Both the position numbers and the translations under genes were made by a program. 64,000 nt of DNA, from NCBI GenBank assembly GCA_030704615.1, contig CM060734.1:47740001-47804000 (forward strand), written 5' to 3'. Position 1 is the stretch's first letter. The number at the start of each line of letters is the position of its first letter. This stretch comes from Takakia lepidozioides. Its lineage: Eukaryota > Plantae > Bryophyta. The notes beneath the pieces were generated by a model. That model did not search any database and had not been told where the DNA came from. It saw only the letters and a program-made list of their open reading frames with translations. Positions 26,366 through 52,725 of the stretch are shown here, in pieces.

Positions 26366-27961
26366 ATGTCTCAAATTGTTGTACTCCTTTAGGACTCAAT
26401 TTGCACACCATAGCATGTGAGGGTCCTCTCGGGATTTTTCATGTGCTTATGTAAGGTATGGAAGTATGAAAAAGGGATAGTAGACCTGGAAAACCACAAA
26501 AGCCCATTCTCGTAGGAATTTGCTCCTTTGCGGTATGCATAAGTTAGGGGCACCAAACTTTACTACTAATAAACCTAAAAAATTGGGCATAGTTCTTCAC
26601 CAAAAGTGTTTAGCTATTGAAAAGGGAGGAGGACATGTTCTTGAAATGGCTACAAGATCCTTTAATTTTGAATTAGAGGCCCAAAGGAGTTCTCACAAAT
26701 GAGATATCATTCATTGGAAATTCTTTTAAAATAGTCAATATATGAGATAATTTCAAAAAAATTACATGAGCATCTGCAGCATTGAAGTAGGCATTGAACA
26801 AACTAAACCCGGCCTAGAAGCGATCAAGGGAAAGAAAATGGCGACAAACAGAAGTCGAGGTAGTCCTGTAAGCTCAAAAATGGAGAGATGCGAGACAGTG
26901 TGAAACCGGATGAAAAATGTTTCACATACATAAAAGGATTGGATGTGGATAGTTTAGGGTCCTGTAATACGAAAACGGCGTTGGTGGCGTGATAGTTTCT
27001 TCTGACATTACGGGGAGTGCTTACGAGGAGGAGGAGAGACGAAGTGATCGATGGTGGCATTCTTGATTATGGCTGTCTGTGCAGTTTAAGGTCTCAGGAA
27101 GAAGCACAGACATGGCTCATGGTTTTTGAGCGCCGTGGTGATCGTTCTTCATTCGAAGGCGTCTTAAGGGTGGTTCCTCATTATCTTGACATGCATGAGC
27201 AGTAGAAATTGAGGTGAGCTTGATGCTGGCCTTTGTGCGACCGTCAGATGCGAATGGATTAGTGGGTCCAATTTGAGGAGCTCTTTTTGCTTGCTGCACT
27301 GTGTGGGTAGACGGGCAACTGGAAACAGCAAAGGCAATAATGCAATTGATAGAATATGGCATTGTTGATGAAGGATCATTCTTCAACACATTTCAGCCTG
27401 TTTTTCCCTGTTATTCCATATTATCAGAGTCGTCCCTAAGTTTTCATGTTGAATTATGTAAGTTAGGTCATTGCTGGATTTATGGTGGTTTCTTCCTGAT
27501 GTTTACAAGGTTGTTGGGAGAGTCAGCTTGGTCTTAGCAGGCAGGGTTTCAATCTCTGCCTGCTCAGTTGCACCGTGGTGGTTCTCATAGACCAATCCGA
27601 CATTACACCACTACACAAACAACTTCACACACAACTTCACACAGAAGAGGTCCTTTAGGGTTGATGGTCAGTCAAATCGTCCATGGATCATGACACAAGG
27701 TCGAGGACAATGTGGTGAAGCCACCTTCTTGAATCTATTTCAGCCTGTTTTGCCCTCTCATCAGACTAGGTACATAGATAAGCCCCTTGAAATAAAGTAA
27801 GTCATCTTTGAACTCGAAGTCGTTTGTAACATGTGGGTTGTCTCGAGGTCGATTTAGTTGACTTCGTAGTGTCATAGCGAATTGGTCGTTCTTCAGTGCT
27901 TCCTGAATCTCCTTTATGATCTCGGCATCGTCAGAGGTGGACATGGATAACATATTCAATT

Positions 27962-28454
27962 TGTCGTGCGCATACATATCGCTACACAACTACATCGCTG
28001 TCCAAACCACACCACACATATATGCACAATAAAGTAGTCTAGCACAATAAAGCATGAAAACCAAACCATCACTCTTAGAAATAGAAGTCGAGCCAGGGGC
28101 ACCCCAAGCTATGGGGACTCCACCCCACAACAACCTACACTCCCATCATAAGCACACTCAGATCTAAACGCATGAAGGAGCTCGGTCGCGCAGGCTCAAC
28201 TCGAGAGAGATGAGCTGCGCGACTGCCGCTCTCGTGAAGATAAGACAGACCAGGTGTCAAACTAAACTTGACACCTGATTTAACACTTGACCTAAATCCA
28301 AGTGTTAAATACAAATAACTAGTTTTATTCTAGCTGTTTTCACACTGTGCTTATTTAACTTGACAGCTGTCGTGCGCATACATATCGCTACACAACTACA
28401 TCGCTGTCCAAACCACACCACACATATATGCACAATAAAGTAGTCTAGCACAAT
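27962..28454. repeat. E1 A-B-GC-A repeat block (sense 3' end)
   Basis: 87-bp A copies read as identical; 317-bp B matches the other terminus; junction cttgaca-gc-tgtcgtg at 28359-28374. Confidence 0.93.
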
Positions 28455-28464
28455 CGCCCCCCTA
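28455..28464 (-). other. Polypurine-tract-like site of E1 (sense TAGGGGGGCG) abutting the inner A repeat
   Basis: cgccccccta directly follows the inner A copy in both E1 and E2 (49340-49349). Confidence 0.65.
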
Positions 28465-28712
28465 GCTGGTGGATAGGTCCCTCTACCTCCAGATAGCTAC
28501 AAGATGTAATAGCCACAGCCGTACTAAGTCCTCTATCACTGTCTTTATCGTGCTCAAACTCTATCAACCAAGAGGCCGGGTACAAGAGTAGCCCCATCGT
28601 TAGTCGCCGTCTTGCAATCTATGAACTTGAGCCAAGATCTCGTGTGTTCAAGGTCTCCTAGTAGCTGGGCCTTGCGTTTCTTGTTAGCCTCCCATGGTTG
28701 TATCCACTCCCA

Positions 28713-31700
28713 CTATCCAATGCAATGTGGACAGAACCAATCCCCATCCGGAACCATCTCAAGAGGTGGAGTCAAGCATCCCATATGCCAACCTCTAGAG
28801 CACCGATCACATACCAGCATGGTGGCTGCCCCTTTAGCAGACCCACACAACATGCACCTCAAACCTGCAGATACCACTGCCAGGTTTGGGTCAATCCTGC
28901 CATCGACATTCGGAAGGTGACATGGCGCACAATTACGCACATGGTCCTTCCAAGTGATGCCATCCCGACCCTCCAAGACCAAGACGCCTGAGGGCAAGAC
29001 CTCTCGAACCCTCAAAATAACACGTCCTGCAGTCACATCCAGGGTCGTAGGAGCAGTCTGCTGCAGATAGACATAGTCACCAGGGTTGAATCTCCGAACC
29101 CCAGGACGATAGCCCCCACCACGTATGGTAGCATACCTCAACGTATCACGGTGTTGTGCAATGGCAAGGTTCTCGAAAGCCATAGGCATGACTCTCTTGA
29201 ACAACTCTGCACGCTGCTCACATGCACGTGCCCACACGTCCGGATCGTCAAGGTTAAGAACTGTAGCAGCTTCTCTGCGAATGGATGTAGGCAAATCCGG
29301 CTCTCGGCCAAAGAGAAGAAAGTATGGTGAGAAGGAGGCAAGTGATGCTTGCTTGCTGAACCTGTAGCCCATGGCTAACCAGGGTAACTGAAGGTCCCAA
29401 TCTCCTAGGTGTCCCTTCTGCAAGCCATACTTGCGCAAACCCCTCTTTACTGTCTGAACAACTCTCTCTGCCAAGCCATCGGCTTCAGGATGATCCCGAG
29501 AAGTGGTGCGGTGGTCTATCAAGGCCTTGTCACACAAAGCCTGAAACTCCCCCAAGAACTCTCTCCCTTGGTCCGTGAGTACCTCAGCTGGAGCACCGAA
29601 TCGGCTAAGCACACAATCCAGGAATGCATACGCAGCTCCCTCACTAGCCTTATCAGGCAATGGAACCAATTCAATCCACTTGGAGAAGTGCTCCACCATC
29701 ACCAACACGTACTTGTTGTGGCGCATGGTCAGTGGCAACGGCCCTGCGAAGTCAAGACTCCACCTGTAGCCCAATCCCATGATCGGAAGAGGGTGCAATT
29801 GTGGAGTAGGGGCGTTGAATGAAGCACGCACCCTGTCACACACCATGCACCTAGCCACAAAGTGTTGTACCTCTGTGTGCATACCACGCCACCAATACTG
29901 CCCCTGCAGTAGACTATGAGTGCGTCGCACCCCAAAATGCCCCAACTCCTCATGGGCATGCCGCACTAACCGTGCCCGCTGTGTTGGGTGAGGCACAATC
30001 CTCACTCGACCATCCTCCCACACTCGGAGCAGGTGTGTCCCCTCCCACCTGAACCTCTTGGCTCGTTGTAGGATCCGATCCCTCTCCTTGGCAGTCATAG
30101 TGGCTGCCGTGTCTCCACTGCGGAGGTAGTCCAACACAACTGAATCCTCATGTATATCTTTGGCGCCACCCTGCTCATTGCTGGCCTCAGGGTCCTCAGA
30201 CACTTGATCTACAGTCATCCCTGTTGTAGGTCCAACCTGGCCTTCCGCTGCCAAGATACACAGAAATGCAGATGCATGCCATCCGGGCACCATCTCCTCG
30301 TCCGTCTCACCATGCCACCGAGCTCCAGTGTCATCCTGTTGGCTCGTGCATGGATTGCGACTCAACCCATCTGCATTTCGATTGACCAAACCCGGTCGAT
30401 GCACCACCTGAAAGTCATACTCTTGAAGGATGAGTGCCCACCGTGCAAGCTTCCCCGTAAGCTTGTCTGACTCCATCAACCACTTGAGTGGTTGGTGATC
30501 CGTGACAAGGGTGAAGAGATTGCCGTATAAATAGCACCTGAAGTGTGCCACGGCCCACACTGCAGCTAAGCATTCTCCCTCATATGAGCTATACTTAGAC
30601 TCTGCAGCATTGTTCGAGCGGCTAGCATAAGCCACTACGAACTCTCTTCCCTCATCATCCACCTGTGTGAGCACCGCTCCAAGCCCCAGCATGCTCCAAT
30701 CTGTATGCAGCTGAAAAGGACGCCCCCTGATAGGTCGTCTCAAGATGGGCGCCGAGGTCAACCTCGCCTTGAGCTCTTGAAAAGCTTGTTCTTGCTCATC
30801 TTCCCACTGCCACTCCTGGTCCACCTTGGTCAGCTTGGTTAGAGCCTTTGCAATGGCACTAAATCCCTTAACAAACCGTCTGTAATAGTTTGCTAACCCC
30901 ATGAAAGCTCGAACTCGGCTCACATCCGTGGGGCGTGGAACCTGTGCAATGGACTCTACCTTAGTCTGCTGTACCCCCAATCCTCCAGGATATATCATGT
31001 GACCCAGATACTCAATCTGGTTGTGGAAAAACTTGCACTTGCCCGGATGTAACTTCAATCCGTGCGTCCTCAAGCGCTCAAATACCCCCTGAAGGTGTCT
31101 CTCATGCTCCTCCACCGTAGCACTAAAGATGATGATGTCATCTATGTAGCACCGAGCAAACTCCACCCCTGCTAGAATCCTGTCCATGACTCTTTGAAAC
31201 TCAGCTCAAGCCCAAATGGTAAGAACCGCCACTGGTATAGGCAATCCTTCCCGTGCTCATTGATCCCCCAGAATGCCGTCTTTTGCTTATCCGCCTCCTT
31301 GATCGGCAACTGGTGATATCCGGATCGTAAATCCAACGTGCTAAAGACCTTGGAATGCCCAATGGCATCAAAGATCTCCTCTGGTGTTGGCATGGCATAC
31401 CTATCGGACTTGGTCTGACGATTTACAGGCCGGTAATCACCGCACATACGTCTCTCCGTCCAATTGCCATAGACATCCTTCTTAGCTGGCATCACTGTGG
31501 CTGAAGCATACTCTCCACCAGAGAGCTCCACCAAACCTGCCTCCCAGAGATCTTGAGTCCTCATCTGAATCAAAGACCTCTCCATGTCACTGTATCTATA
31601 GGGTCTCCGAAAGATTGGCGTGTCAGTGGCCAACTCAATACGGATCTCTTGACCCTTCAGTGCTCCCAAGTCCTTCAAACTGAAGGCAAAGCAATTCCTG

Positions 31701-31837
31701 TAAGCCCTCAGGAACCGCCGTATACGTCGTCTCTCTCCTCCGGTGACAATGGGTCCAATATCAGGCTCCCAATTGTCCTCCGTAACTGCAACCTTAAGTC
31801 CAGTGGGCTTAGAGGTAGAGGACGCGTCCCGTGGTTG
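28713..31837 (-). CDS. E1 pol: RT, RNase H, DDE integrase and C-terminal PHD finger (about 10-nt deletion frameshift near 31205)
   Basis: RMCGDYRPVN, LDLRSGYHQL, YIDDIIIF, LHTDWS...YEGECLA...TDHQPL, H-H-C-C zinc finger, LDFAGP/TDQGREF/AER catalytic D-D-E, PHD C4HC3 at 28722-28856. Confidence 0.93.
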
Positions 31838-34800
31838 CTATGCTGCAACCTCTTGAGCAGTACCCCCTTCCTGCTCAGTCAATGACAAGGCCTCATCCTG
31901 CCCCATCATCTCATCATTGAGAACCTCCTCATCCATCGCAGCTGCCTTCGCTGCCAACTCCCTCTGAACCTCGAGCACCTCCCACATGTGCCATGGATGT
32001 CTACACCTCGTGGTCCTCACCGGCTCGCCCCCACTCGCTGCCTGTACCGTCTCGGTAGGCAGAGAGACCATCAAGGGAAGTGCACTCCGCACTCTACGTT
32101 GCTCAGCCATAGCCAAGCTGACAATCCAGGTCAAGCAATTGAGATCCATTGCTTGCCCCAACACCTGACGACGTGATGCCTCAGAAAGGGAAGGCACCGC
32201 CGTGGTCCCAGTGGAAAACCCCATAGCCCGCTCTCGCTCGTCGGCATTAGGCTCCACTAACTGCTGCAACTGAGCATCCCACAGGAGGCCAGGTCCACCA
32301 TCCCGAAAAGCATGGGATCCTGGGAAGCTGAGCAGTGTAGGTAATGCTGCTCGTGGTTGACCCACCCTGTTGACCACTGCCAAAGGCGAACGGTCATCGT
32401 GTCTCACACGTTGAGACTGCCTTCCTGTGTCCAAAATGCCATCCACGGTGAGGTGTGCTGGCCGCTGCACCCCATCAAATGCACGCTTGAGCAGTGCGGG
32501 TGGCATCAAGTTAGTCCACCATAGTCGTGGACGATGAGCCCGTGACCCCACTGCAGCTGCATCCAGCAATACTGCTGACCCAAGCCACGACCGGACTTGA
32601 TGCACACTGGCCATCACCCTGGCCCGAGAATCACCCATCAGTGGCACATTCTCCAAGATGTATGCCGGAGATACAGCCTGATGAAGCTGCAAGTGGCGCA
32701 AAATCCGCACCATCTCCCAAAACAGACCCGTCCTCGAGTCTCGCAATCCATTGCCATGCCCGGCTGATGAATGCCCTTGGCAGGGCCAACCTGCCACTAC
32801 CAGATCAATGGAGCCAACCCGCTCCAAATCCTGCGCCCCCAGCAACGCAATGTCTGCTGGCAAGGCCTGCTGATATCCACGAACTGCAGACACCGGCAAC
32901 AACTCAGGGTGCTGCTGCACCATCTGAGCAACATGGCGCAGTGAGACGCGTCGTGCAGTCTCATCCCTCTCCACATACAGGTAACGTCGAACTCGTACAC
33001 CTGCCTGCAGCACTGCAGCCAATCCAGTGCTGATCCCGCCAAATAAGTCCAGAAGGCATATGCCTTCATCCGGTCGCTGCCACACAAGAGGTGTGGTGTC
33101 CAATGGCGACAACTGAGGTGGCCCTGGTACAATCACCGCACTCTCCTCCTCTCCTGACGGTACAAAAGCTTCTACCCAAGCTTGTTGCACCCGTCCATCA
33201 GCAGCGTGCTGCAAATCCTTGCTCGTACCCCACAACGGAGTGTGAGCAACCATGGCAGGCAACTCCGCCGTACCATGCATGTCATCCTGCTCTGCTGGAG
33301 GTGGCACATCCTCTGCATGGGCATTGCCTTCCAGCAACTCTCCAGGCCAGCTGACTGCAGCTGTGAAGGCGGCTAGTGTTGGCATCTTGCCCCGCTGAGC
33401 AGCTGCAATACCCCCAATGAATGTCACAGGGAGCTGTGCACGGCGACCATCCCCTGACTGCCATCCAGGCCTGTAGGATGCTGACTCCTCCCAGAAATCC
33501 AGGGTGAAGCCCATGGGGTATAACACTGCCCCACCAACGAGGACATCGTAAGAGACCGCGTCTGTCACAATGGCCTTGGCTCGCATCACTGAGCCATCTA
33601 CAGGATGATCCGGCTGCAGTCTAATAGCCAACTGATGTCGTGTCATGCCGCGAGCCTGCTCTGATCCTCCCAGAGATGTCTGTATCTGGAAAGGACAAGG
33701 CTCCATATCCGCCTCCATGAGGCCCAAACCTGCAATAGCAGCTCTGCCCAACATCAGTGGCTGAGCTCCTGAGTCCAACAAGACCCGCAGTGGCCGGTAC
33801 TTCTTGCCTGCCGGTCCACTCAAAGTGAAAATGCCTCCCTGGTTGTCTAACAAGACAACTCCAGGTGTCACCATGGCGCGCTCAAAGGCTGGCCTAGCTG
33901 GCAGCTCCGTCAATCTGGCAGCTGCAGCTTGCCAGGGCGCTGCCGTGGCAGTCTTGACCCTCAAATCCGAGGATCCCTCTGCCACTACACCTTCCACTAA
34001 CTCCGCAGAAGATGAAGTGACCTCTCCACTCTCGCAGAGTGTTGCTGCTAGTCTGAACACTGCAGCTGGTCTCACTCCCGGCGTCGCAATCATGGTCGCC
34101 GAGAACAGTGGGGCTTGACACACAGAGGTGGCTGCTCCCAATAACACACCGGCTGCACTAGCCTTGGTAGTAGGTGTCAGTGCTGCACGGGTAGCTCTCC
34201 CCAATGGCAAAGTAACCTCCGCCTCGGTAACAGTCGGGCGAGAACTAGGTGCCATGGATGGCGTTGACACTGTCTCCGCCAAGGTGAATGACTGAGGCAG
34301 CCTTGCCTGACGGCTTGCCTCCCCACGTTGTGGATCCAACTCCACCTCTGCACCTCGTGGCTCAGGAACTCGTGTTGCTCCTCGAGTCACGGCTGCAGCA
34401 GACTCCACCTGCTCTAATGGTAGTGCTGCTCCGCACATGAATCCCATTCCGCCCATATCTCCTCCCTCAGGAGCAGGAGGTGGGCCATCCCGCCTGGGAG
34501 CCGGTACCGCCTGAGCTATAGCCATGGCAGCGATCCTCTGCTCTAGCTGCTGAAGCCGATTGGCCATGCCTTGGTCAACACCCTGACCTCCGCGTCCTTG
34601 GCCATGTGGAGGTTGCCCTTGGCCTGCACCTCGTGCCCGACCACCTCGTCCTCTTTGGGCTGGTCCACCTCGCCCCCGGCCACCATTGTTCCCTTGGAAC
34701 TGGCCTGGGCGCAACTCAGGATGCAAGTCATAACACTGGGCATCTCCATGCCCATACTTGCCACAATGTCCACACTGCAACTGTGCAGGCTGTGCTTGTG

Positions 34801-36010
34801 CCGGCCTTCTGCCACTCTCTGGGCAATCTCTCTTGACATGGGGTCCTCCACATGTCCAACATATCACCCCTGGTTGCTGTTGGCCTGCAAAAGATGCCAC
34901 GGGCCTCTGCACCTGAGGTCCCCTGTAAGCTCCATGGAACTTGGGCTGGGCAACCTTGCCCCCCTGACCACGCTGTTGGGCAGTCCCTTGTGCTTGTGGG
35001 CTGACAGCTGTGCCCCGTACAGGCATGTCCTTACCAAATCCAATTGTAACAACTCGCTCCTCCACCATGTTGAGCTCAATCCGCTCAGCCAGCAGAAACA
35101 CATCTGCTAATGTGGGTTGGGCTGCTTGTAACAGGGTTGCATCTCGCACCCTTCTCTTGAGCTCCTTGTCCAGAATTCCATACCAAAATTGGATTGCCTG
35201 AGCTTCAGTAACCCCTTGGGTCACACTTATCAAGCGCCTCATACGAGTGTACGCCTCTCGCAGGCTCTCACTGGGTTTGCGCTGGAAGTCTTGCAAACTT
35301 CGCAGCTTCTCTGTCCGTACACCTTGGTAGTTCCTCCGCAACTCCTGGAAGAACTCCACCACCGGGTTGAATCTTGGCAAATGTGTTGTAGTCGTGGCAG
35401 GAGAAGCACCTTTTGAACTGGTACCACCTTCAGAAGTACCAGCACTACTTGCTCCACTACTAGTGCTGGCAGTGGGAGCTATTGGTACTGATGCAGCTAC
35501 TGGTCGCGTCGTGCCTCGAGTAATGGAGACGTAGTCAGGTGACCAATACATCCTCCACTCCTCAATCTCTGCTTCATGTCCTCGCCTGAACTCGTGGTAA
35601 TCGTCCATAGGCGGGCCTTCCAAATGCTGGAACAGTCCCTTCCACGCCATGAATGGGGTGAATAGCTGTGGATTGCACATCTGCTGCAAATCACACCAGC
35701 TGTCGAACTCCTGGATAAAGTCATCCAACTCGATTGTGCCCACAGCTCCAGAGTACCTACGAGGCCCCTTGGTAGCTCCATACATCTCCTCCATGTCGTC
35801 CCACAACAATGGCGAATGAAAGTGCACACCTGTTGATGAAGCCTCCGAGTCTGTGTCTGACGCTACAGTAGTTGAGGGTGGCGGTGAAGGTGGTCTGAAC
35901 CGAATACCTCGTCTTGTGAACCCACTCTCACTGTCACTGCTTGTAGCCGTACTCCCCTCAAAACCCTTGGGTAACTCCGTAATGACACTCACAATGTGCA
36001 CCTCCTCCAC
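31838..36010 (-). CDS. E1 ORF1: Gag (two zinc knuckles, RGG-rich), aspartic protease and DNMT3-like C5 cytosine methyltransferase (about 32120-33065)
   Basis: Open 1390-aa frame; CWTCGGPHVKRDC, CGHCGKYGHGDAQC, VLLDSGA; MTase motifs LDLFGGIS, YVERD, AGWPCQG, YILENV, AHRPRLWW, ERERAMGF, RRQVLGQA. Confidence 0.92.
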   Translation of the reverse strand: MEEVHIVSVITELPKGFEGSTATSSDSESGFTRRGIRFRPPSPPPSTTVASDTDSEASSTGVHFHSPLLWDDMEEMYGATKGPRRYSGAVGTIELDDFIQEFDSWCDLQQMCNPQLFTPFMAWKGLFQHLEGPPMDDYHEFRRGHEAEIEEWRMYWSPDYVSITRGTTRPVAASVPIAPTASTSSGASSAGTSEGGTSSKGASPATTTTHLPRFNPVVEFFQELRRNYQGVRTEKLRSLQDFQRKPSESLREAYTRMRRLISVTQGVTEAQAIQFWYGILDKELKRRVRDATLLQAAQPTLADVFLLAERIELNMVEERVVTIGFGKDMPVRGTAVSPQAQGTAQQRGQGGKVAQPKFHGAYRGPQVQRPVASFAGQQQPGVICWTCGGPHVKRDCPESGRRPAQAQPAQLQCGHCGKYGHGDAQCYDLHPELRPGQFQGNNGGRGRGGPAQRGRGGRARGAGQGQPPHGQGRGGQGVDQGMANRLQQLEQRIAAMAIAQAVPAPRRDGPPPAPEGGDMGGMGFMCGAALPLEQVESAAAVTRGATRVPEPRGAEVELDPQRGEASRQARLPQSFTLAETVSTPSMAPSSRPTVTEAEVTLPLGRATRAALTPTTKASAAGVLLGAATSVCQAPLFSATMIATPGVRPAAVFRLAATLCESGEVTSSSAELVEGVVAEGSSDLRVKTATAAPWQAAAARLTELPARPAFERAMVTPGVVLLDNQGGIFTLSGPAGKKYRPLRVLLDSGAQPLMLGRAAIAGLGLMEADMEPCPFQIQTSLGGSEQARGMTRHQLAIRLQPDHPVDGSVMRAKAIVTDAVSYDVLVGGAVLYPMGFTLDFWEESASYRPGWQSGDGRRAQLPVTFIGGIAAAQRGKMPTLAAFTAAVSWPGELLEGNAHAEDVPPPAEQDDMHGTAELPAMVAHTPLWGTSKDLQHAADGRVQQAWVEAFVPSGEEESAVIVPGPPQLSPLDTTPLVWQRPDEGICLLDLFGGISTGLAAVLQAGVRVRRYLYVERDETARRVSLRHVAQMVQQHPELLPVSAVRGYQQALPADIALLGAQDLERVGSIDLVVAGWPCQGHSSAGHGNGLRDSRTGLFWEMVRILRHLQLHQAVSPAYILENVPLMGDSRARVMASVHQVRSWLGSAVLLDAAAVGSRAHRPRLWWTNLMPPALLKRAFDGVQRPAHLTVDGILDTGRQSQRVRHDDRSPLAVVNRVGQPRAALPTLLSFPGSHAFRDGGPGLLWDAQLQQLVEPNADERERAMGFSTGTTAVPSLSEASRRQVLGQAMDLNCLTWIVSLAMAEQRRVRSALPLMVSLPTETVQAASGGEPVRTTRCRHPWHMWEVLEVQRELAAKAAAMDEEVLNDEMMGQDEALSLTEQEGGTAQEVAA

Positions 36011-36529
36011 GTGACACTATAAGGCTCTAGTACTAATCTAATAGTGACACGGGTGGGCACCTGTTGCAGTCTAAGGATCATATCCCAATGGCTCAGGGCA
36101 CCTGCACCTGCATCCACCGCAAGAACTCCTATGGTTGGCTGGTCATCAACCCAGCCTCACCATAGAAGAAACACTGGTGGTCTTGCTGGTCATCACTCCA
36201 GCCTCACCACCGACAGCATACTCTAGGATTGACCGGTGATCAAATCCGGCCTAATCCCTATGAAAGCAAGCGCCCACACAAAACCAACATGGCGCACAGT
36301 CAAGCATGCAGGTGTTGGGGGGGATCCAAACACAAGAAATCAAAACATCAACACCCCCACACCAAAATCCAGCTGCAATGTTGATCCTGCAGAATATCCC
36401 AGCCCAAAACCCCGGACTGACTGGCCTCCACCAAGAGAGGCTTTGGCAACTACAAGTACAAGGTAATGAAAATAGTACAGAGATGGAGGGGAAGAATAGA
36501 AGCCCGCCCAAGCAAGATCTAATCCTGAT

Positions 36530-37366
36530 CTATGCTATCAACTTCCAGACTTCTCTCAAAGTGCCTCGCTCTGCTTGATGGTAAGGTGTAGGAGGTATAT
36601 CTATGTCCAGAAACCTGCCACTAACCTTGTCCCAAGCTACAGTAGCTCGCTCTAACCAACCCTCCTCCTCTTTCTGCCAGGTAGAGACAAAGCAGTACTC
36701 CCCTATCTCCCGCTCACTGAACACTAAAGAAAACAAAGGTAGGGTCTGATAGTCTCTCAACTCGAAAGCTTTGAGACGGTTGCGGGTGTCTTCATTGCGG
36801 ATGACTGCATCGCCTTCAAACAGAACAAACTTGTCCTCGCTAATGAACCCCCGTTCGTGGTTGCCTTGTGCAGAGCGTGTCCGTCTGCAACACTGTCTAA
36901 TTGCACAAACTTGTGCAGCTCCTGCTCCTCTGCTCCAGTACACCACGGCCTTGTGGCTGAACACCTTGGTCCCCGGAGCTGTCTTTGGCTGTGTTCCAAG
37001 CCTAGCTTTCACCCACTTTGGTATTTCACCTACAGCTGCAGAACTGCTGGCTCCAACAGAGTTCTGACTGTCCAAGGCGATATTGAGGCCCTCAATGCCA
37101 ACTACAGCAGTCTGTTGTCTACTGCTAATGCCTGACCCCCAGTATGCAATCAACTCGTCCAACTGTTCTCCACTCAAATCAGTCTGAGTTCCTTGGGAAA
37201 CATAGATCCTGTCCCCTTGTGTGCACAGGCTAAGAGAAGAGACCTGCCCTTCAATTACGTCCTCATTTCCCCCAGCCATACAGGGAGTACATCCACAGGT
37301 TTGTCTCTCATATAGGCCAGCACAGGTTCTAGAAACAGGATTGTGGATATTTCGTGGCACACTCAC
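36530..37366 (-). CDS. Unknown 278-aa ORF inside the E1 leader
   Basis: Long open frame, sense to the element, absent from E2; no recognised motif and no ATG start. Confidence 0.3.
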   Translation of the reverse strand: MSVPRNIHNPVSRTCAGLYERQTCGCTPCMAGGNEDVIEGQVSSLSLCTQGDRIYVSQGTQTDLSGEQLDELIAYWGSGISSRQQTAVVGIEGLNIALDSQNSVGASSSAAVGEIPKWVKARLGTQPKTAPGTKVFSHKAVVYWSRGAGAAQVCAIRQCCRRTRSAQGNHERGFISEDKFVLFEGDAVIRNEDTRNRLKAFELRDYQTLPLFSLVFSEREIGEYCFVSTWQKEEEGWLERATVAWDKVSGRFLDIDIPPTPYHQAERGTLREVWKLIA

Positions 37367-37817
37367 ACTCTAAAAATTCCATAGATTTTTAGCAGAGTCC
37401 CCAAAACATAAACCAGGTTTAGATAGGTAGATTTCCCCTTTCTGTAGGTCCCTGTGCAAGTTTTGGGTCAATCGGCCTTGGTAGGCCAAAGTTATGGCCA
37501 AACAGGCTCTATCTAATTTAAATTAGATCAAAGAACGAATTTCTTTTAATTTTTCACACCCAAAACGTTCTCGCCATCAAAAACTGTTCCCACGTTTTTT
37601 GCGATTCACTGCAGGTTCCCTAAGAATTCCTTAGACTCATGCCAAAATAGTTGTCAGGATCAGTGAATACCAGTTATACGAAGGCACCTCATTTACTTTG
37701 TGTGCTGATTTTGGGGTTACCTTTCTGGACGAATTTAAATACTTTCACTTCAGTATTTAAATACTTTCTCGCCATCGCTCAGGGAGAGAGGCAAAGCGGA
37801 CGCAGACGAGGGCAGCG

Positions 37818-37938
37818 ATGGCCAAGCCTACGCGAGCAAGCAGGAACAAGGAGGTGGTGTGGGGTGTTGGCCAATTCGGCCGATCAAAGACCTACCACAA
37901 GCGGAGTTTGTGGGCCATCAAAGCCAAGCATGGCGGCG
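37818..37938 (+). pseudogene. RPL6: Captured fragment of 60S ribosomal protein L6 N-terminus
   Basis: MAKPTRASRNKEVVWGVGQFGRSKTYHKRSLWAIKAKHGG resembles the plant eL6 N-terminus (RN..L..GVG..SRS.MYHKRGLWAIKAK.GG). Confidence 0.8.
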
Positions 37939-38355
37939 AGCATGGTCACGAGCTTCTTCTTGCAGATCAGTGTACATACTTCCAACAGTGTCCCCGATCT
38001 CGAGCCAACTTGGTGGAGGTTGATACACATCATGACCATGAAGGTGGTATGGTTCCAACCTTACTCCATGAGCAACCCTTGCATCTCGGGGAAAGCCACC
38101 AACTCCAGGCACTTGTGAAAGGCCTCGAACTCCTCCTAGGGACAGTTCAACCCCGCCATTCCTCTCATATTGCAACTGCGCAGCCTGTTGTGCTGCTTGC
38201 TTTCTTACAACTGCTGCAAAATCCGGGACAGATCTAGACTCCCCACCAAGCGTGCTTGTCCTGCTGGAAAGGGCTGACCCATTCACTGCTTCAAGCCCAG
38301 ACAGAGAAGGAAAATCCAATGGTGACGAAGGACTTGGTGCTTGAGGTGCCTGAAA
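37925..38355 (-). pseudogene. Captured fragment of a CID7-like (PAM2/Smr-domain) gene
   Basis: LDFPSL, PDFAAVVRK...YERNG, WLEIGDTVGSMYTDLQEEARDHAR recalled from plant polyA-binding-protein-interacting protein 7. Confidence 0.65.
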
Positions 38356-38379
38356 CTGCTTCGATGGGCCTCCCTCAAC

Positions 38380-39137
38380 ATTGGTTTGAGCCTTTTCCTT
38401 CTTAGCTACTACCTGAGTCTGCAAATGCTGCACCCAGCATGCTCCTAACTCCCACCGAATGCTCCTGTCATCCTTGTTCTCATCCTCTTGGTCCAGCCTG
38501 ACCAGGCTCTTTGCCAACAGTGTATAAACCAAGCCCCCAACATTTTTTTACCTCTTCAGCATCGGAGGAAGGCCGTGCTCGTCCATTAGCACTCATGTGA
38601 AGAAGAGTGCGGAGGCTGTTCACATTGAGGGCATTTCCACCCCCTTCACGCTGGTCTTCCCACAACCACAACAGTAGGAATCTCTTCCCCATTCTGAAGC
38701 TTGGGCCCACTGCTTCAATAAGAACAGTAGATCCTTTGTGTCATATACAGTGGTGCTCTCATCAGCTGTGATTGCCTTCAGGAGATGGGTTGAGGTTTTT
38801 GTGACCAAGAGTTTTGGCTGGAGGCTTGTTGCAGAGGTCACTCATTCTGAGCTCCGCAAATATGCTATACTTCGAGGTCTTTGTCACAAGGTAGGGATTG
38901 AAGTTTCTCCTCGAGACTATGAATTGGATACGCCCACCCCATTCAAGAGAGTTGACATTATCAGCATGGTTCCTATCTACAAGCAAGTTGCTTGCTCATC
39001 TGTAGTCGGGCGGACATTATTGGAATCGTCTAAAACAGCTTTGGACAAGGGCAAGCTTGACGATGCCGTCAGCTTTGGGACGAAGGCCTTGGCAAAGTTA
39101 GTGGCCGTTTGTGGGCCCTATCATCGGATGACTGCTG
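38380..39137. pseudogene. Captured fragments of a CLU-family TPR gene (REC/TSS-like) in both orientations
   Basis: Minus: [38 protein letters not shown]. Plus (38780-39137): [21 protein letters not shown]...[46 protein letters not shown]. Confidence 0.8.
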
Positions 39138-39273
39138 CATCAGTATTGATCCCCTGCACATCTAGCTTCCAGCGAGCCTTGGCTACTACTTCAAACGTGA
39201 CGGCGTTGCTCCTTCCGCTGGACAGACTCATAGGTGACCAAGCTGCTCCCATGCTATAAGTCATCCCCTCCCT

Positions 39274-39490
39274 TTATCGCTGCTGGTGCTGGATTCCAAT
39301 GAGCACCTTTAGCACGTCTTGCATGGAGGGGCGTCTATCAGGCACCTCGTGTGTGCAAAGCATGGCCACATCCATCAGCTGCAGCAGCTGTTTGTCAATA
39401 CCTGTGGTCTTCAGCAGTTTCACATCAAGAACTTGCCTGGCCAGCTCTGGCTTCGCCAATGCTTGCCGCACCCACTGTGAGTTGTTCACG
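39274..39490 (-). pseudogene. Captured C-terminal fragment of a receptor-like kinase
   Basis: QWVR...VLD..L...QLMDVAMLCTHEVPDRRPSMQDVLKVL (kinase subdomain XI). Confidence 0.75.
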
Positions 39491-39833
39491 CCCTCACTGA
39501 CCAGAATAAAGGCTGCTTCCCCGCAGTATAGCTCCGTCCTGCCCCTGCGGCCTCATGCCAGAACCAACGCTATCCTTACCAGTGGAAAGACACCAGTTCT
39601 TTGCCCCTGCTTGACATGCAGCCTGCCTCCATGGACCATCTATATACCCAGAAACCAGAGATGATCGAAACCTGCATGTTTTTTTTTTTTGTTTTTTTTT
39701 TAAAGCTTCTCAAACTAAGCACTACTTACACACAGGTAATCATACAAGTGCTAACCCTTAACTCCTACCTTGCACTCACAGATAAGAGGTCATCTCTCTC
39801 GAGTGATAAGCAAGCTAAAGTCACACACGATGC

Positions 39834-40648
39834 AAAGCATGAAAACCAAACCATCACTCTTAGAAATAGAAGTCGAGCCAGGGGCACCCCAAGCTATGGG
39901 GACTCCACCCCACAACAACCTACACTCCCATCATAAGCACACTCAGATCTAAACGCATGAAGGAGCTCGGTCGCGCAGGCTCAACTCGAGAGAGATGAGC
40001 TGCGCGACTGCCGCTCTCGTGAAGATAAGACAGACCAGGTGTCAAACTAAACTTGACACCTGATTTAACACTTGACCTAAATCCAAGTGTTAAATACAAA
40101 TAACTAGTTTTATTCTAGCTGTTTTCACACTGTGCTTATTTAACTTGGGGACTCCACCCCACAACAACCTACACTCCCATCATAAGCACACTCAGATCTA
40201 AACGCATGAAGGAGCTCGGTCGCGCAGGCTCAACTCGAGAGAGATGAGCTGCGCGACTGCCGCTCTCGTGAAGATAAGACAGACCAGGTGTCAAACTAAA
40301 CTTGACACCTGATTTAACACTTGACCTAAATCCAAGTGTTAAATACAAATAACTAGTTTTATTCTAGCTGTTTTCACACTGTGCTTATTTAACTTGGGGA
40401 CTCCACCCCACAACAACCTACACTCCCATCATAAGCACACTCAGATCTAAACGCATGAAGGAGCTCGGTCGCGCAGGCTCAACTCGAGAGAGATGAGCTG
40501 CGCGACTGCCGCTCTCGTGAAGATAAGACAGACCAGGTGTCAAACTAAACTTGACACCTGATTTAACACTTGACCTAAATCCAAGTGTTAAATACAAATA
40601 ACTAGTTTTATTCTAGCTGTTTTCACACTGTGCTTATTTAACTTGACA
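39834..40648. repeat. E1 terminal B repeat (sense 5' end) containing 3 tandem 249-bp units
   Basis: Units start at 39897, 40146 and 40395; 317 + 2 x 249 = 815 bp. Confidence 0.92.
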
Positions 40649-43600
40649 AATTGGAGATTTGCTGGTTTCAAGATGATGGATTTCTGTTGGTCAAAAACTG
40701 CATCCCCTTCCTTTGGCGCAAGATACGATCGTCGAGAAAGAGCATCTGGTTTTCCTTGAAGATGTCCGGGACGGTAGGTAATAACAAAATCAAACCTTGC
40801 TAGTGACATACTCCATCTCGCTTGACGTCGATTCAAAACACGAGCACTCATAAAATATTCGAGGTTTTTGTGATCGGTATAGACAGTGACCTGATGTTTA
40901 GCTCCGTCCAATAGATGACGTCACTCCTCAAAAGCATCGATAATCGCTAGAAGTTCTTTGTCATGGATTTCATAATTGATCTCCGCAGCGGAAAATTTGC
41001 GAGAACGAAAACCAACAGGGTGGAGTCGGCCATCTGTACCGTATTGTGAGAGTACCGCGCCAAGTGCAAAGTCCGATGCATCTGCTTCTAAGAAGAATGG
41101 TTTAGATGGGTCTGCATGTACCAGTATTGGAGCCGTTGTAAATTCCTGCTTCAGCCTTTCAAATGCCTGGTCAGCCTTCTCATCCCATACAAATTTGTCC
41201 TTCCATGTGAATCATGTCAATGGTGCACCAATTTTGGAGTAGTCATTGATGAAGATTCTATAGAAATTTGCAAAACCCAGAAAACATTGTACATCTCGGA
41301 CCGAAGTTGGTTTAATCCACTCGATGATGGTTTGTATTTTCTTCTGATCCATAAAGACGCATTTGTCGGAAATAATGTAGCCCAGAAATTCGACCTCAGA
41401 TTGATGGAAAAGACATTTTTCCAACTTGGCATATAGTCATATTTCTCTTAATTTATCAAGGACAAGGCGTACATGGCGGCCATGTTCTTCTTCGTTCTGT
41501 GAAAATATCAAAATGTCGTCCAAATAGATGACTACAAAGTCATCTAAAAATTCTCGAAAGATGTCATTCATCATATGTTGGAAAATTATTGGAGCATTTG
41601 TAAGACCGAAAGGCATAACACTGTATTCAAAAATGTCCATACCTTGTTCGAAAAGTTGTTTTCCATTCGTCTCCTTCTTTTATCCGTACAAGGTTATAAG
41701 CTCCTCTCAAGTCGATTTTGGTGAAATCCTCGCTCGTCCCACCTGGTCGAGAAGCCCAAAAATCAGCGGCAACGGATAACGATTCTTGATTGTGACTTTG
41801 TTGAGACCGCAATAGTCGACACACATGCGTAATGATTCGTCCTTCTTTTACACAAACAAGAGAGGCGTCCCCGCGGGTGATTTTGAATGTCGGATGAAGT
41901 GCTTTGACAAATTTTCATCAATGTATTCGCGTAATGCTGACAACTCCGTCTGGGATAAGTTATAGATTGGGCCGAATGGTGGTTGGGCTCCTTCTTGTAA
42001 CTCAATTGCACAGTCATAAGGTCGATGTTCTGGCAATATGTCTGCATTTTTCTTCTCGAAGACATATTTGAAATCTTGATATTGAGCGGGTAATGTTGAA
42101 GTACCTTTGTCTGTTGTGGTCTTGATCGGAGTCGCATAAAGTGCAAATGTCACCTCCTTTTTGGTAGCTCTCATGAAGGCTCTTGCTCCAAGAAACAGGG
42201 GTTGAATACCTTTGGTACTTTTGCATTTTTGTCTTGCCGAAATTTTTCGTGATTGCCAGTCGATGTCAGGATTATGAAGTACAAACCAGGGAAGTCCAAG
42301 GATCACAGGATTCGTTGGAGACTGGATGACATTGAAAACAATATGTGATACTTGATTTTTAAGTTTCACTTCAAGGGGTCAAGTTTCATGGTCAACATTT
42401 CCTGATGCTAACGGTCGTCCATCGATAACTTCAACAGGGGCCGAGAATTTCTTTCTTACGAGCGTTAAATTGTGTTGCTTCACAAAAACTTTGTCAATAA
42501 AACACGCTAAAGCGCCCGAGTCCAAAAGTGCTTCTATGGAGATATCTCGATTTTGCATCCTGATCTTTACTGGAACTGTGAAACAAGATACAGGATCTGG
42601 AGGTAGAAAGAGACTTTTTTTGGGTGAGAAGTTTGGGGTGTCCAGCCGCATGCTCCCTACTGTGACTGGACATCTTCGTTTTCCGACCTCCTCGTATCGA
42701 ACACTTGAGTGGTGCCCCGAGCTTTGAATCTTATCTTGTTGGGGCAGTTTAATGCCATGTGATCATTTTCTCCGCAATAAAGGCATAATCCATTCGAGCG
42801 TCGTCTTTGTTTTTCATGTGGCGTCAATGGCTTGAATCGGACAACATCAATCTGCATAGGATCATTACCGGATGTCTGATGGATCGTTGAATTTGGTGCC
42901 GTAGTAGCAGCGGCACGGTGCGTCGTCGACCATCCAGATCGCTTCTCTTGACGTCTTTCGAACAAATGATTATTGCATGCAATGACTTGGGTGATGAATT
43001 CGCTCAGTGTACTCATGTTTGGCATTGTCAGTAACAAATCTTTAACATCATCTTTTAGGCCACATCGAAACTGATTAATGAGGCTCTTCTCATTCCAGTC
43101 AAGGTCGCACGCAAGTTGTTGAAATTCGGCAACATAAACGGAAGCTGGACGTGCTCCTTGTCGAAGATTTCGCATCTTTGTTTCTGCAACTCTCTCTCTA
43201 TCATTCTCTCCAAACGTTGCAGTGAACTCGGACATAAACGCTTCAAAATTATATAGTAAATGCGAATTTTTCTCTAATAGCGGTGCAAACCAAGATAGGG
43301 CAGTGCCTGATAGAAGGGTGCCCACGAATCCCACTTGAATACCTTCATCAGAGTAGCGTTGTGTATGTAGTCGTAGGAACAATCGTACTTGTTGAACAAA
43401 TCCGCGAAATTTTGATCTCGTCCCATCAAATTTCTCGGGCATGCTGACCTTTGGTTCCCTTGTAATCTGCTGAAGATTTGGAGGAACCGTTGTAGTAGGA
43501 TTTGTTGTAGTAGGGACTCGTAAGGTTGAAGATCCATTGTTCGACTCCTTCAACTCTGAAATTTGTTGTTGCAAATTGTTGAGAGCATTGCCAAGGTCTT

Positions 43601-44660
43601 GAGACTGATCAGCTTGTAGTTGGGCAATAGAGGCACAAAATTCTTGCATCTGGAGCTGAAGACTCTGCTATGTGGCGACCATTTCCGCAAATGTGCCTTC
43701 CATCTTAACTAACTAAGGAACAAACTTCAGTTTCGCCAAACTGTCAAGGACGAGAACATGGCTGAACACAAACAAGAGATAAGACTAGAGGTACAAGGCT
43801 TAAAAGAAATCAAGGTCGGCGTGGCCGAATGTACTATGAGTAAATAGGAATCAAGACGATCTTTTATAACAATGAACAAGAGTACAAGATATTGGAACAC
43901 GACTTGAATACTGGAATGCTGGAAACTGGACTGGAGTACCAGATACTGGAAACTGGGCTAGGGTACTGGGAACTGGACTGGAGTACTGGGAACTGGAAAC
44001 AAGAGTAGCTTGAACTGGTGTTGGCGAGACTGAAGAGTGTCCAGTCTCGCCTCTTATATATACTGGATACTAAGAAGCTTCATGAGTAGTTTCCTAAGTT
44101 ACTCTTGGTAATTTGATAAACTCCCGGTAACTTGGTAAGTAATGGTAAATCATGGTAGATCATGGTAAATCACAGTAAGTCATTGTAACTTCCGGTAACA
44201 TGGTAACTTGGTAACTTCTGGTATTTACTCCTAGTAAGTTCTTCTGGGCTATGTCCGTGACAGAAACCACAATAAATCCAGCAACAACCTAACTTACAGA
44301 ATTCAACATGAAAACTTAGGGACGACTCTGATCAAAGGGAAAAACATGCTGAAATGTGTTGAAGAAGGAACCTTCATCAGCAGTGCCTTATTCTATCAAT
44401 TGTGCTGCTGTCGTTGCTGTTTCCAGTTGACCATGTACCCACGCACTGTAACAAGCAGAAAGAGCTCCTCAAATTGGGCCCACTAATCCATTGGCATCTG
44501 ACTGCCGCACAAAGTTCCAATTCTGAAAATTGCATCTGCTTCTCTTTGTAGTCCAACGGGCATTCACCTTTTTGTCTCTATTGTCCCACCCTTTACTGGG
44601 GTTGGAAAGTGTTCATTCCAACGCTTCTCCTAATCTCTGTTACCTGTTTTTGTTTCGGCA

Positions 44661-47078
44661 GAAACTTGTCAAATTCGAATTCTTCAAACATGTCATGATC
44701 TTCCGGCTGCAGGACATTTCGGCTTCAACAAAACAATGAAATTGATATCCAGGGACTATTGGTGGTCACAGATGTGGAAACTCGTGAAAGAATTTATAAA
44801 ATCTTGCGACACGTGTGCTAGAGCGAAGGGACCACGACATCGACCTTACGGCCTTCTTCAACCATTACCCATTCCCAAGGGTCCATGGTCGTCCGTGTCT
44901 ATGGACTTTATTACGGACCTTCCAATCTCCAAGACCACTGATTCAATCCTTGTTATTGTAGATCGTTTTTACGAAGATGACACATTTCATTCCATGTAAT
45001 AAGACATTTACCAGCGTGGAAACTGCAAGACTCTTCTTCAATAATATCTACCGCATTCATGGACTCCCGAAGGACATCGTATCTGATCGAGGACCACAGT
45101 TCATATCAAATTTCTGGAGGGGATTATTTCACATATTGGATACTAAGATCAACATTTCTACAGCTAATCATCCACAGACTGATGGTCAAACCGGACATGT
45201 AAACCAGATTTTGGAGCAGTATCTTCGTTGTACGATAAATTATCACCAAGATGATTGGACGGACCTTCTGTCATTGGCTGAGTTTGCCTACAACAACACT
45301 ATACATTCTTCGATCCAACAAACTCCATTTTTCTCCAATTATGGTCATCATCCTCAAGCAAACCCTTTCCGCATGAAGACTGTTGGAAGCCCTGCTGTAG
45401 AAAACCTTACTACACATCTTGCTACGATTCACAAGGAAGTTACATTCCACCTCGCAGAATCTCAAAAACAATACAAGGAGTATGCAGATCAATGTCGCCA
45501 ACTCCAACCCCAGTTCAAGATCGGAGATCGTGTGTGGCTTCTTCGACGGGACATACAAACCTCGCGACCATCAAGGAAGTTGGATTATCAACGCCTGGAC
45601 CCATTCAAAATTATTCGACAAATAAATCCGGTCAGTTTTCGGCTTGAACTCCCACGAAGTATGCGCAACCATCCAGTCTTTCATGTTTCATTATTGGAGT
45701 TGTATCATCCATCGAATATTCCAAGGAGAGTCTCCGTACCACCTCCACCAGTCGAAGTCAATCCAGAACTTGAGTATGAAGTCGACGAAGTCCTAGACTC
45801 TCGCATCAAGTATAAATGTCTTGAGTATTTCATACATTGGAAAGGCTACGACATCAGCAAACGAACGTGGGAACCTTCATCCAACCTCGCCAATGCATCT
45901 GACAAAGTCCAAAAGTTTCATCAACGATATCCAGTTAAGCCCCGAGCTACACGTCAATAAGACGTTACAACGATGATGTCAGTCAAGTTAGCTTCAAGGT
46001 GAAGACTCCACATCAATGTACCTGATACACGTTAAGGTGGGAGAAGTACCACACATCAGTATATACAACTACACTTCCAACACTCTTGCATCTTGTACTT
46101 CCTCGTCTGAACCCCGTACGACGGCAAGTGGAGCATACTCGAAGTCTGATAATTATGTTGGAGGTTGAGGCTTCGGACCCAGAGGGCAACAAAATCATGT
46201 TTGAATGCAGCTTCGAAAATCAGAATGTTCAAATCACTGCGTGGTCCCAAGTTGAAGGTGTTGGACACTATCGATGGTTGCAGAAACCTATAAATCATTT
46301 GAGTCAAGAACGAAGAGCCGAATACTTGGCAAGTATCATTTGTCGGATTTTGGATTTTCTCCAACTTTAAAGCAAGTCCAAGATTTTACCGCTCCTAGAG
46401 GAACTCGGCGCTAGAGGAGGGGGTGATGTCACGGACATAGCCCAGAAGAACTTACTAGAAGTAAATACAAGAAATTATCAAGTTACAATGTTACCGGAAG
46501 TTACCATGACTTACTGTGATTTATCATGATCTACCATGATTTATCATTACTTACCAAGTTATCGGGAGTTTACCAAATTACCAAGAGTAACTTGGGAAAC
46601 TACTCAGGAAGCTTCTTTTGAGATGAAACTTCTCCATCAAGATACCTCCTTTGTTTAAGGAAGCTTCTTCATCAAGAAACCTTTGTTTAATCTTGGAAAC
46701 TTCTCCAGCAAGAAACCTCCATAAGGGAAGCTTCTTGGGGAAGCTTCTTAGTATCCAGTATATATAGGAGGCGAGACTGGACACTCTTCAGTCTCGCCAA
46801 CGCCAGTTCAAGCTACTCTTGTTTCCAGTTCCCAGTACTCCAGTCCAGTTCCCAGTACCCTAGCCCAGTTTCCAGTATCTGGTACTCCAGTCCAGTTTCC
46901 AGCATTCCAGTATTCAAGTCGTGTTCCAATATCTTGTACTCTTGTTCATTGTTATAAAGATCGTCTTGATTCATATTTACTCATCGTGCATTCGGCCAAG
47001 CCGACCTTGACTTCTTTTAAGCCTTGTACCTCTAGTCTTATCTCTTGTTTGTGTTCAGTCATGTTCTCGTCATTGACA
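44661..47078 (+). mobile_element. Same chromovirus, 3' half: integrase, chromodomain, PPT and 3' LTR (46427-47078)
   Basis: CHDLPAAGHFG...CDTC, SMDFITDLP, SDRGPQF, HPVFHVSLL, chromodomain EYEVDEVLDSR...YFIHWKGY...TWEP; PPT agaggaggggg at 46413-46423; LTR is the reverse complement of 43742-44262 plus about 131 bp extra; followed by GTTTC. Confidence 0.9.
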
Positions 47079-52500: not shown

Positions 52501-52725
52501 GATTGGCGTGTCAGTGGCCAACTCAATACGGATCTCTTGACCCTTCAGTGCTCCCAAGTCCTTCAAACTGAAGGCAAAGCAATTCCTGTAAGCCCTCAGG
52601 AACCGCCGTATACGTCGTCTCTCTCCTCCGGTGACAATGGGTCCAATGTCAGGCTCCCAATTGTCCTCCGTAACTACAACCTTAAGTCCAGTGGGCTTAG
52701 AGGTAGAGGACGCGTCCCGTGGTTG
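49596..52725 (-). pseudogene. E2 pol: RT, RNase H, integrase, PHD (49605-49739); several frameshifts and a stop
   Basis: ORF pieces 51514-52566, 50882-51514, 50634-50927, 50402-50680 and 49596-50255 are collinear with E1 pol. Confidence 0.92.

Follow-up and report, generated by a model that had tools for sequence, protein, structure and literature searches.

The DNA analyzed here (the window) is a stretch of 64,000 nucleotides from the bryophyte Takakia lepidozioides (assembly GCA_030704615.1, contig CM060734.1, positions 47,740,001 to 47,804,000 of the forward strand), and it contains two retroelements, named E1 and E2, with split direct repeats in the place where long terminal repeats (LTRs) would be expected (Table 1). 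A preliminary description of the sequence had given the layout on the plus strand as A-B-GC-A-internal-B. This order holds for the repeats; since all the open reading frames (ORFs) of E1 and E2 are on the minus strand, the order in the coding sense, with the repeats written as A' and B', is B'-ORFs-A'-GC-B'-A'. The 5' end of both elements thus consists of B' alone, and the 3' end consists of A'-GC-B'-A'.

Comparison of the repeats confirmed the split arrangement in both elements, together with their TGTCG starts and TTGACA ends on the plus strand, the 4-bp target-site duplications (TSDs), AATT and AAGT, and the position of an internal palindrome, GACA-GC-TGTC. This palindrome is made up of both element ends joined head to tail, and it is the proposed integrase site. 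In E1, the outer and inner A copies (87 nt each) are 100% identical. The length of 317 nt initially given for its B repeat is correct for the left copy, which equals the start of the right-hand copy; the latter is 815 nt long and contains three 249-bp tandem units that are 100% identical. The boundary of these units is 3 nt away from the end of the element, and a single unit is present in the 3' B'. The triplication of the 5' B' could be a slip in the synthesis of the plus-strand strong-stop DNA or a later unequal exchange. For its part, E2 has A copies of 190 nt (outer) and 187 nt (inner), three small indels apart, B copies of 325 nt each that are 100% identical, and one extra nucleotide at 48825, between A and B. 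Both elements had been regarded as independent copies, and they are indeed separate insertions, although from related families: they are 88% identical across about 8 kb of internal sequence, and their repeats are 70 to 88% alike. The 5' leader of E2 includes a C-rich tandem array (57653-58480, period of about 51 nt) that is absent from E1, and apart from that array the two leaders are unrelated. The insertion site of E2 is a satellite-like repeat (48558-48623 and 60331-60469), the period of which is about 73 nt.

Table 1. Positions of E1, E2, and other features in the window (PPT, polypurine tract; PBS, primer-binding site; RT, reverse transcriptase; DNMT, DNA methyltransferase)
Feature	Position	Coding strand
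E1, whole element	27962-40648	minus
E1 TSD AATT, left copy	27958-27961	
E1 terminal A' (3' end in coding sense, ...CGACA)	27962-28048	minus
E1 3' B' (coding-sense start TGTCAAG; PBS-complementary R start at 28199-28213)	28049-28365	minus
E1 internal palindrome GACA-GC-TGTC = GACAGCTGTC	28362-28371 (GC spacer, 28366-28367)	
E1 inner A'	28368-28454	minus
E1 PPT, ..AGGGGGGCG in coding sense	28455-28466	minus
E1 ORF: RT end, RNase H, integrase, C-terminal PHD finger (about 28722-28856)	28713-31187	minus
E1 N-terminal RT part	31172-31837	minus
E1 ORF: gag (weak), aspartic protease (weak), C5 cytosine methyltransferase	31838-36010	minus
E1 self-priming PBS, 15 nt, perfect complement of 28199-28213 in B'	39790-39804	minus
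E1 5' B', three 249-bp tandem units (about 39897-40643)	39834-40648	minus
E1 TSD AATT, right copy	40649-40652	
E2, whole element	48635-60321	minus
E2 TSD AAGT, left copy	48631-48634	
E2 terminal A'	48635-48824	minus
E2 3' B'	48826-49150	minus
E2 internal palindrome GACA-GC-TGTC	49147-49156 (GC, 49151-49152)	
E2 inner A'	49153-49339	minus
E2 PPT, adjoining inner A'	49340-49351	minus
E2 coding region, at least five ORF pieces (gag; protease?-DNMT; RT; RNase H; PHD)	49596-56898	minus
E2 self-priming PBS, 13 nt, complementary to mid-B'	59983-59995	minus
E2 5' B'	59997-60321	minus
E2 TSD AAGT, right copy	60322-60325	
LINE-like RT with zf-RVT	1100-4120	plus
Intronless PPR-E-DYW gene, 746 aa, organellar RNA-editing type	9810-12050	minus
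ORF antisense to E1 leader	38738-39259	plus
Ty3-type gag	42657-43649	minus
Integrase C terminus with SH3 and chromodomain (chromovirus)	44977-45960	plus

In the coding sense, E1 comprises the 5' B', a leader of about 3.8 kb, an ORF, an in-frame stop, a second ORF, and then the PPT, A', GC, B', and A'. Its Pfam matches follow the order RVT_1, RT_RNaseH, RT_RNaseH_2, Integrase_H2C2, and rve, with a weak protease match, and the top match in a search of solved structures was Ty3 Gag-Pol (E = 4.5e-67). The integrase residues HHCC (H412, H417, C447, and C450) and D,D35E (D479, D539, and E574) are present in E1 and are kept in an alignment of 14 relatives. The HHCC/D-D-E integrase attributed to the pol gene was therefore found in E1, while in E2 the integrase region is degraded, with no long ORF in the core region (50255-50882) and pol in at least five pieces. 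In E1, pol is broken by a frameshift near 31172-31200, which splits the N-terminal RT from the remaining pol. No tyrosine recombinase (Pfam Phage_integrase) was detected among all E1 ORFs of at least 150 amino acids on either strand and six of the ten ORFs in E2. The Pfam scans and the Ty3 match are in agreement with the original proposal of a DDE-integrase element having Ngaro/PAT-style repeats and TSDs, and no recombinase.

Both elements also matched PF00145, and the FGG, PCQ, and ENV motifs of the methyltransferase are readable in E1. The domain (about 32200-33100 in E1, with the Pfam core at 32525-32854) lies between the protease and the RT; in E2 it is located in the ORF at 52726-54693. 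A PHD finger, present in most relatives, occupies the C terminus of the integrase (ORF 49596-50255 in E2), the position in which chromoviruses carry a chromodomain. The in-frame stop between the gag-protease-DNMT and RT-RNase H-integrase-PHD ORFs is at the same place in both elements (31838-31840 in E1 and 52726-52728 in E2), and because it is kept despite the 12% divergence between them, it may be a read-through signal.

The protease-RT-RNase H-integrase order with HHCC and D,D35E, the TG..CA termini (TGTC..GACA), a TSD within the 4 to 6 bp of the group, and the flanking PBS and PPT are those of Ty3/gypsy elements (Metaviridae), in which the identical LTRs at both ends would also be expected; these are missing from E1 and E2. 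The repeats, in the coding sense, follow instead the A1-ORFs-B1-A2-B2 order of the DIRS order (Ngaro/PAT-like). Ngaro/PAT elements have a tyrosine recombinase, no DDE integrase, and no TSDs, whereas E1 and E2 have an HHCC/D,D35E integrase, TG..CA ends, and 4-bp TSDs. The inner B1A2 corresponds to both ends joined in the two groups, as Goodwin and Poulter reportedly described for Ngaro/PAT, and no other permutation is known among Ngaro/PAT elements.

Troyka elements had been mentioned in the preliminary description as possibly having a comparable split layout. They are LTR retrotransposons with a DDE integrase and unusual termini, as E1 and E2 are, but they have ordinary LTRs, 3-bp TSDs, and CG..CG termini and occur in animal phyla only, and split repeats are not mentioned for them (Kojima 2025, PMC12440569). 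Given the 4-bp TSDs, TG..CA termini, split repeats, and streptophyte hosts of E1 and E2, Troyka was rejected as a comparator. The combination of Gypsy domains with this arrangement of the repeats had in fact been reported elsewhere. In the legend to Fig. 4c of de Mendoza et al. 2018 (PMC5890265), the repeats of KnitGypsy-Dnmt3 are said to be DIRS-like and its domains Gypsy. The layout, for which novelty had been considered, is thus already known, and E1 and E2 are new members of the KnitGypsy-Dnmt3 lineage, with both of its hallmarks, a Dnmt3-like methyltransferase within a Gypsy-type gag-pol polyprotein and DIRS-like repeats. A copy from Klebsormidium nitens (L003) shares with E1 and E2 the layout, the CA-GC-TG palindrome, the TSD, the PBS logic, the PHD finger, and a DNMT-like stretch (L003:9147-9800, by tblastn). 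The pol of the window elements is only 43 to 56% identical to that of K. nitens and is liverwort-like, the grouping being by similarity ranking. TSDs, an att site, a PPT/PBS analysis, and a mechanism are not given for KnitGypsy-Dnmt3 in PMC5890265. Beyond that article, we came across nothing in the searchable literature on integrase elements with split repeats or on the way in which the layout arises, nothing on the TSDs, palindromic att site, PPT/PBS logic, or one-sided permutation of this lineage, and nothing on its unit-length copies or its spread to Zygnematophyceae and liverworts.

The closest named matches to the E1 RT-integrase ORF came from the liverworts Calypogeia fissa, Riccia sorocarpa, and Marchantia (75 to 78% identity), followed by Klebsormidium and Closterium, with the K. 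nitens proteins among the best named matches. The split-repeat layout was found in all five: Calypogeia (TSD GTCA), Riccia, Klebsormidium (TSD TCTT), Closterium, and Marchantia. A scan of Joint Genome Institute (JGI) metagenome contigs yielded 80 further loci, from which duplicates were removed by their 3' flanks. Among the unique metagenome copies, 23 had the split-repeat form (B'-int-A'-GC-B'-A', where int is the internal region), 21 were of unit length (B'-int-A'), and none had ordinary LTRs (LTR-int-LTR). The mirror permutation, B'-A'-GC-B'-int-A', was found in none of the 19 metagenome loci with a readable 5' side, nor in any of the 24 copies obtained by adding E1, E2, Calypogeia, Klebsormidium, and Closterium, versus 30 copies with the observed split-repeat permutation. 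Ordinary two-LTR copies, which would have spoken against the preliminary description if they had been in the majority, were absent among about 50 unique relatives. The layout is therefore not a one-off, as had been argued from the two window copies, and its recurrence in five other species and 23 metagenome copies excludes chance and assembly error.

Exact 4-bp TSDs were observed in 10 copies, and 3 of the 4 nucleotides matched in 3 more; 4-bp TSDs are present in E1, E2, and at least eight relatives. The young copies, with repeats 97 to 100% identical (E1, E2, Calypogeia, and Klebsormidium), are all of the split-repeat form. DNMT-like matches were obtained by tblastn in 47 of 86 loci, essentially wherever there was enough upstream sequence, including Klebsormidium, Closterium, and Marchantia; the DNMT, the PHD finger, and the split repeats are therefore traits of one lineage. 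The 21 unit-length copies (L005, L008, L019, L021, L024, L026, L027, L030, L032, L035 to L037, L047, L051, L055, L059, L061, L067, L071, L080, and L081) have no repeats and end exactly at ...GACA. Both ends were readable in seven of them, with an exact 4-bp TSD in L005, L021, L051, and L067, a match of 3 of 4 nucleotides in L032, and no match in L019 and L055. In a locus from the chlorophyte Tetrabaena (L085), the repeats were too tangled for scoring. One contig (L049) has ends that are identical over 127 nt (L049:1-127 and 10419-10545), most likely because a repeated element was collapsed during assembly and not because the contig is a real circle.

The signals for reverse transcription were located at constant places in the layout. 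A conserved PPT (..AGGGGGGCG) is found immediately upstream of the inner A' in E1, E2, Calypogeia, Riccia, and Marchantia, and its counterparts in Klebsormidium, Closterium, and the metagenome families are G rich; no second PPT was found ahead of B' or of the terminal A'. At or beside the end of the 5' B', a stretch of 12 to 17 nt can pair without mismatch with a mid-B' segment, compared with 10 to 11 nt at most in shuffled-sequence controls. A PBS of the tRNA type was rejected, as the TGG motif is absent after the 5' B' and this self-complementary PBS was found instead. The sequence of the PBS and its partner differs in seven families (E1, E2, Calypogeia, two metagenome families, Klebsormidium, and Closterium) with the pairing kept, and the E2 PBS shows a compensated change with respect to that of E1; the two segments thus covary across the seven families. 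In several families, a TATA box precedes the PBS-complementary segment by 26 to 33 nt.

This PBS pattern is the signature of self-priming of the Tf1 type. In Tf1/sushi elements and in plant Tcn1, as in E1 and E2, the PBS matches no tRNA and pairs instead with the beginning of the transcript of the element itself; those elements, which are likened to E1 and E2 here by priming, differ from them in having ordinary LTRs and a chromodomain. Self-priming has been predicted for the plant Tcn1 and TAR lineages (Neumann et al., PMC6317226). Since the PPT bounds one side of A'-GC-B' and the self-priming PBS bounds the other, A'-GC-B' is the LTR with regard to reverse transcription, in accordance with the LTR equivalent postulated earlier. 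Its U3 would consist of A', GC, and the first half of B', and its R-U5 of the second half, and LTR-int-LTR would be the expected product. The natural tips of such a product, the A' start and the B' end, have no CA, and the sole TG..CA pair is that of the palindrome inside the LTR. An aberrant copy lends support to this assignment: in the segment L069:3230-3880, PPT-A'-GC-B'-PBS runs into the reverse complement of B', which begins at the R start and goes back to the first base of B', and the copy ends exactly at an internal ...GACA, after which comes the flank. It looks like plus-strand strong-stop DNA that snapped back on its own PBS and was trimmed at the internal CA.

The two joints of the 3' repeat block behave differently. 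The first nucleotide of the terminal A' is the one that adjoins the PPT at the inner copy, and the end of the 3' B' falls on the PBS boundary or within the first few nucleotides of the PBS. Depending on the copy, the B'|A' joint of one metagenome family includes 1, 2, 3, or more nucleotides that come from the PBS; L007 keeps two nucleotides from the PPT side, the 3' B' of E1 ends 29 nt before the PBS-defined end of U5, and E2 shows a 1-nt discrepancy. Because it coincides with the PPT and PBS boundaries and varies from copy to copy, this joint looks like the right tip of a reverse-transcription product joined to the left tip. The A'|B' joint, in turn, is invariant in form: CA-GC-TG is kept from Klebsormidium (GGCA-GC-TGCC) through Closterium to the liverworts, with differing flanks, the exceptions being transition mutations in old copies only.

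Compared with LTR-int-LTR, the integrated form is missing A'-GC on its left side and carries one A' more on its right. The genomic copies are therefore circularly permuted with respect to this product, which would be opened at CA^GC^TG. We propose, with a probability of roughly 0.6, that E1 and E2 are Ty3/gypsy-type elements that undergo ordinary LTR-type reverse transcription and integrate by way of an internal palindromic att site. The transcript would start in the middle of B', about 30 nt past the TATA box, and its first 12 to 17 nt would pair with the PBS adjoining the 5' B', priming the minus strand as in Tf1. The plus strand would start at the PPT adjoining the inner A', and the product would be LTR-int-LTR, the LTR being A'-GC-B'. 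Its tips would not be used by the integrase, for which ...GACA and TGTC... stand back to back inside the LTR with GC between them. The right tip (B' end) would be joined to the left tip (A' start), and the palindrome of the PBS-proximal LTR would be opened by staggered nicks after each CA, leaving CA-3'OH ends that bear GC overhangs and correspond to retroviral ends after 3' processing. The opened LTR would lose its GC and the other LTR would keep it, and strand transfer would then proceed normally, with a 4-bp stagger. A direct linear route, leading to a B'...A' product by ordinary strand transfers, was rejected by reasoning on paper as impossible with the PPT and PBS positions observed.

As to the order of these steps, we favor cleavage before joining. 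The PBS-proximal LTR would be double stranded long before the other LTR and would be cut first; the freed A' piece would afterwards receive the right tip, through end joining or plus-strand template switching. Such an order would yield split-repeat and unit-length products and never the mirror form, so the single permutation would follow from the early cutting of the PBS-proximal LTR. It would also be compatible with a triplication limited to the 5' B' of E1, as a slip in the synthesis of the plus-strand strong-stop DNA. There is precedent for the cleavage itself, given that the integrases of prototype foamy virus (PFV; PMC1180852) and human immunodeficiency virus type 1 (HIV-1; PMC1905944) are reported to cut palindromic LTR-LTR junctions. 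There, too, the palindrome is formed by two ends and is cut to 3'-processed ends, but it exists in the circle only, has 4 nt between CA and TG, and serves a pathway that is at most accessory. In E1 and E2, by contrast, it is built into every LTR, has a 2-nt GC spacer, and seems to be of obligatory use. The stricter claim, that the lineage integrates productively only after the product tips have been joined and integrase has cut the palindrome built into the LTR, is in our judgment an even bet.

The retroviral precedent applies equally to a closed two-LTR circle, made by host end joining, in which integrase would open either of two identical palindromes; this is the preliminary interpretation in its simplest form. 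Such a circle would account for the permutation seen, the loss of GC, the TSDs, and a variable B'|A' joint, but the mirror permutation should then be as frequent as the observed one, and its count of 0 in 24 against 30 makes a closed circle unlikely. A single permutation is what would result from a restoration like that of DIRS elements, in which a subgenomic transcript without either end is copied, the ends are rebuilt on the inner A'-GC-B' as template, and integrase inserts a linear B'...A' DNA by its tips. The repeat geometry is that of PAT/Ngaro, and the internal complementary region of DIRS-1 is essential (PMC7192593). However, the conserved PPT at the inner A', the covarying PBS at the 5' B', the A' start at the PPT boundary, and the variable 3' B' end at or within the PBS would all be left unexplained, and the snapped-back copy L069 shows a plus-strand product running from A' to the PBS; we therefore consider this restoration distinctly improbable.

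The number of unit-length copies in the metagenome set, 21 with good TSDs against 23 of the split-repeat form, could suggest that B'-int-A' is the normal insertion, derived from a linear DNA cut at both palindromes or from a cut one-LTR circle, and that the split-repeat form is a rarer by-product. Yet a unit-length copy lacks the 3' R, so that first-strand transfer could not finish and the lineage could not persist; besides, the four young copies are all split repeat, and unit-length copies are equally obtainable by A'xA' deletion. On these grounds, it is very doubtful that they are the main product, though they may form as a side reaction. Finally, the unusual layout could be ascribed to misassembly, nested insertion, unequal recombination of an ordinary LTR element, or a tyrosine recombinase acting in trans, an explanation with no further support. 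Against it stand the same layout, precise boundaries, and 4-bp TSDs in the two window copies, the five named species, and the 23 metagenome copies, as well as the absence of any ordinary-LTR copy and the TG..CA ends and TSDs, which are marks of an integrase and not of a recombinase; we give it next to no credit.

Several points weigh against integration through the internal palindrome as proposed here. The whole mechanism is deduced from integrated copies. Pol is broken in both window copies, which are thus uninformative as to whether the integrase that they encode is active. From a closed, symmetric two-LTR circle the mirror form would be expected as well; it was seen in 0 of 24 copies, and an assumption of asymmetric timing or substrate is needed to account for its absence. 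The 21 unit-length copies could be either primary dead-end products or later A'xA' deletions, and the variation at the B'|A' joint sits in A/T-rich sequence, where ordinary slippage could contribute.

The other features of the window are listed at the end of Table 1. Among them, the intronless PPR-E-DYW gene is indicative of a land-plant host. The ORF antisense to the E1 leader gave a 45-amino-acid match to eIF3_p135/CLU (E = 2e-5) and may be a captured fragment of a host gene.

According to the textbook scheme for LTR retrotransposons and retroviruses, a linear DNA is integrated by its tips, and two-LTR joined forms count as dead ends. In this lineage, from Klebsormidium to the liverworts, the boundaries of reverse transcription (PPT and PBS) are offset from those of the integrase (TG..CA) by a circular permutation of the LTR, and because of this offset a productive insertion seems to need tip joining and internal cleavage. 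In the genomes of bryophytes and charophytes, such elements will be missed or misannotated by LTR finders that seek two identical LTRs. A further feature of the lineage is that it brings its own DNA methyltransferase and a PHD finger. The interest lies mainly in the mechanistic implication, which is unproven: an old question, the use of the junction palindrome by integrase in vivo, becomes directly testable, and a mechanistic bridge is offered between retroelements with a DDE integrase and those with a tyrosine recombinase. If the proposed mechanism is true, this would be the first retroelement with a DDE integrase that obligatorily uses an internal, circle-junction-like site, a natural counterpart of the circle junctions of IS3-type elements and a DDE-based convergence on the geometry of Ngaro/PAT.

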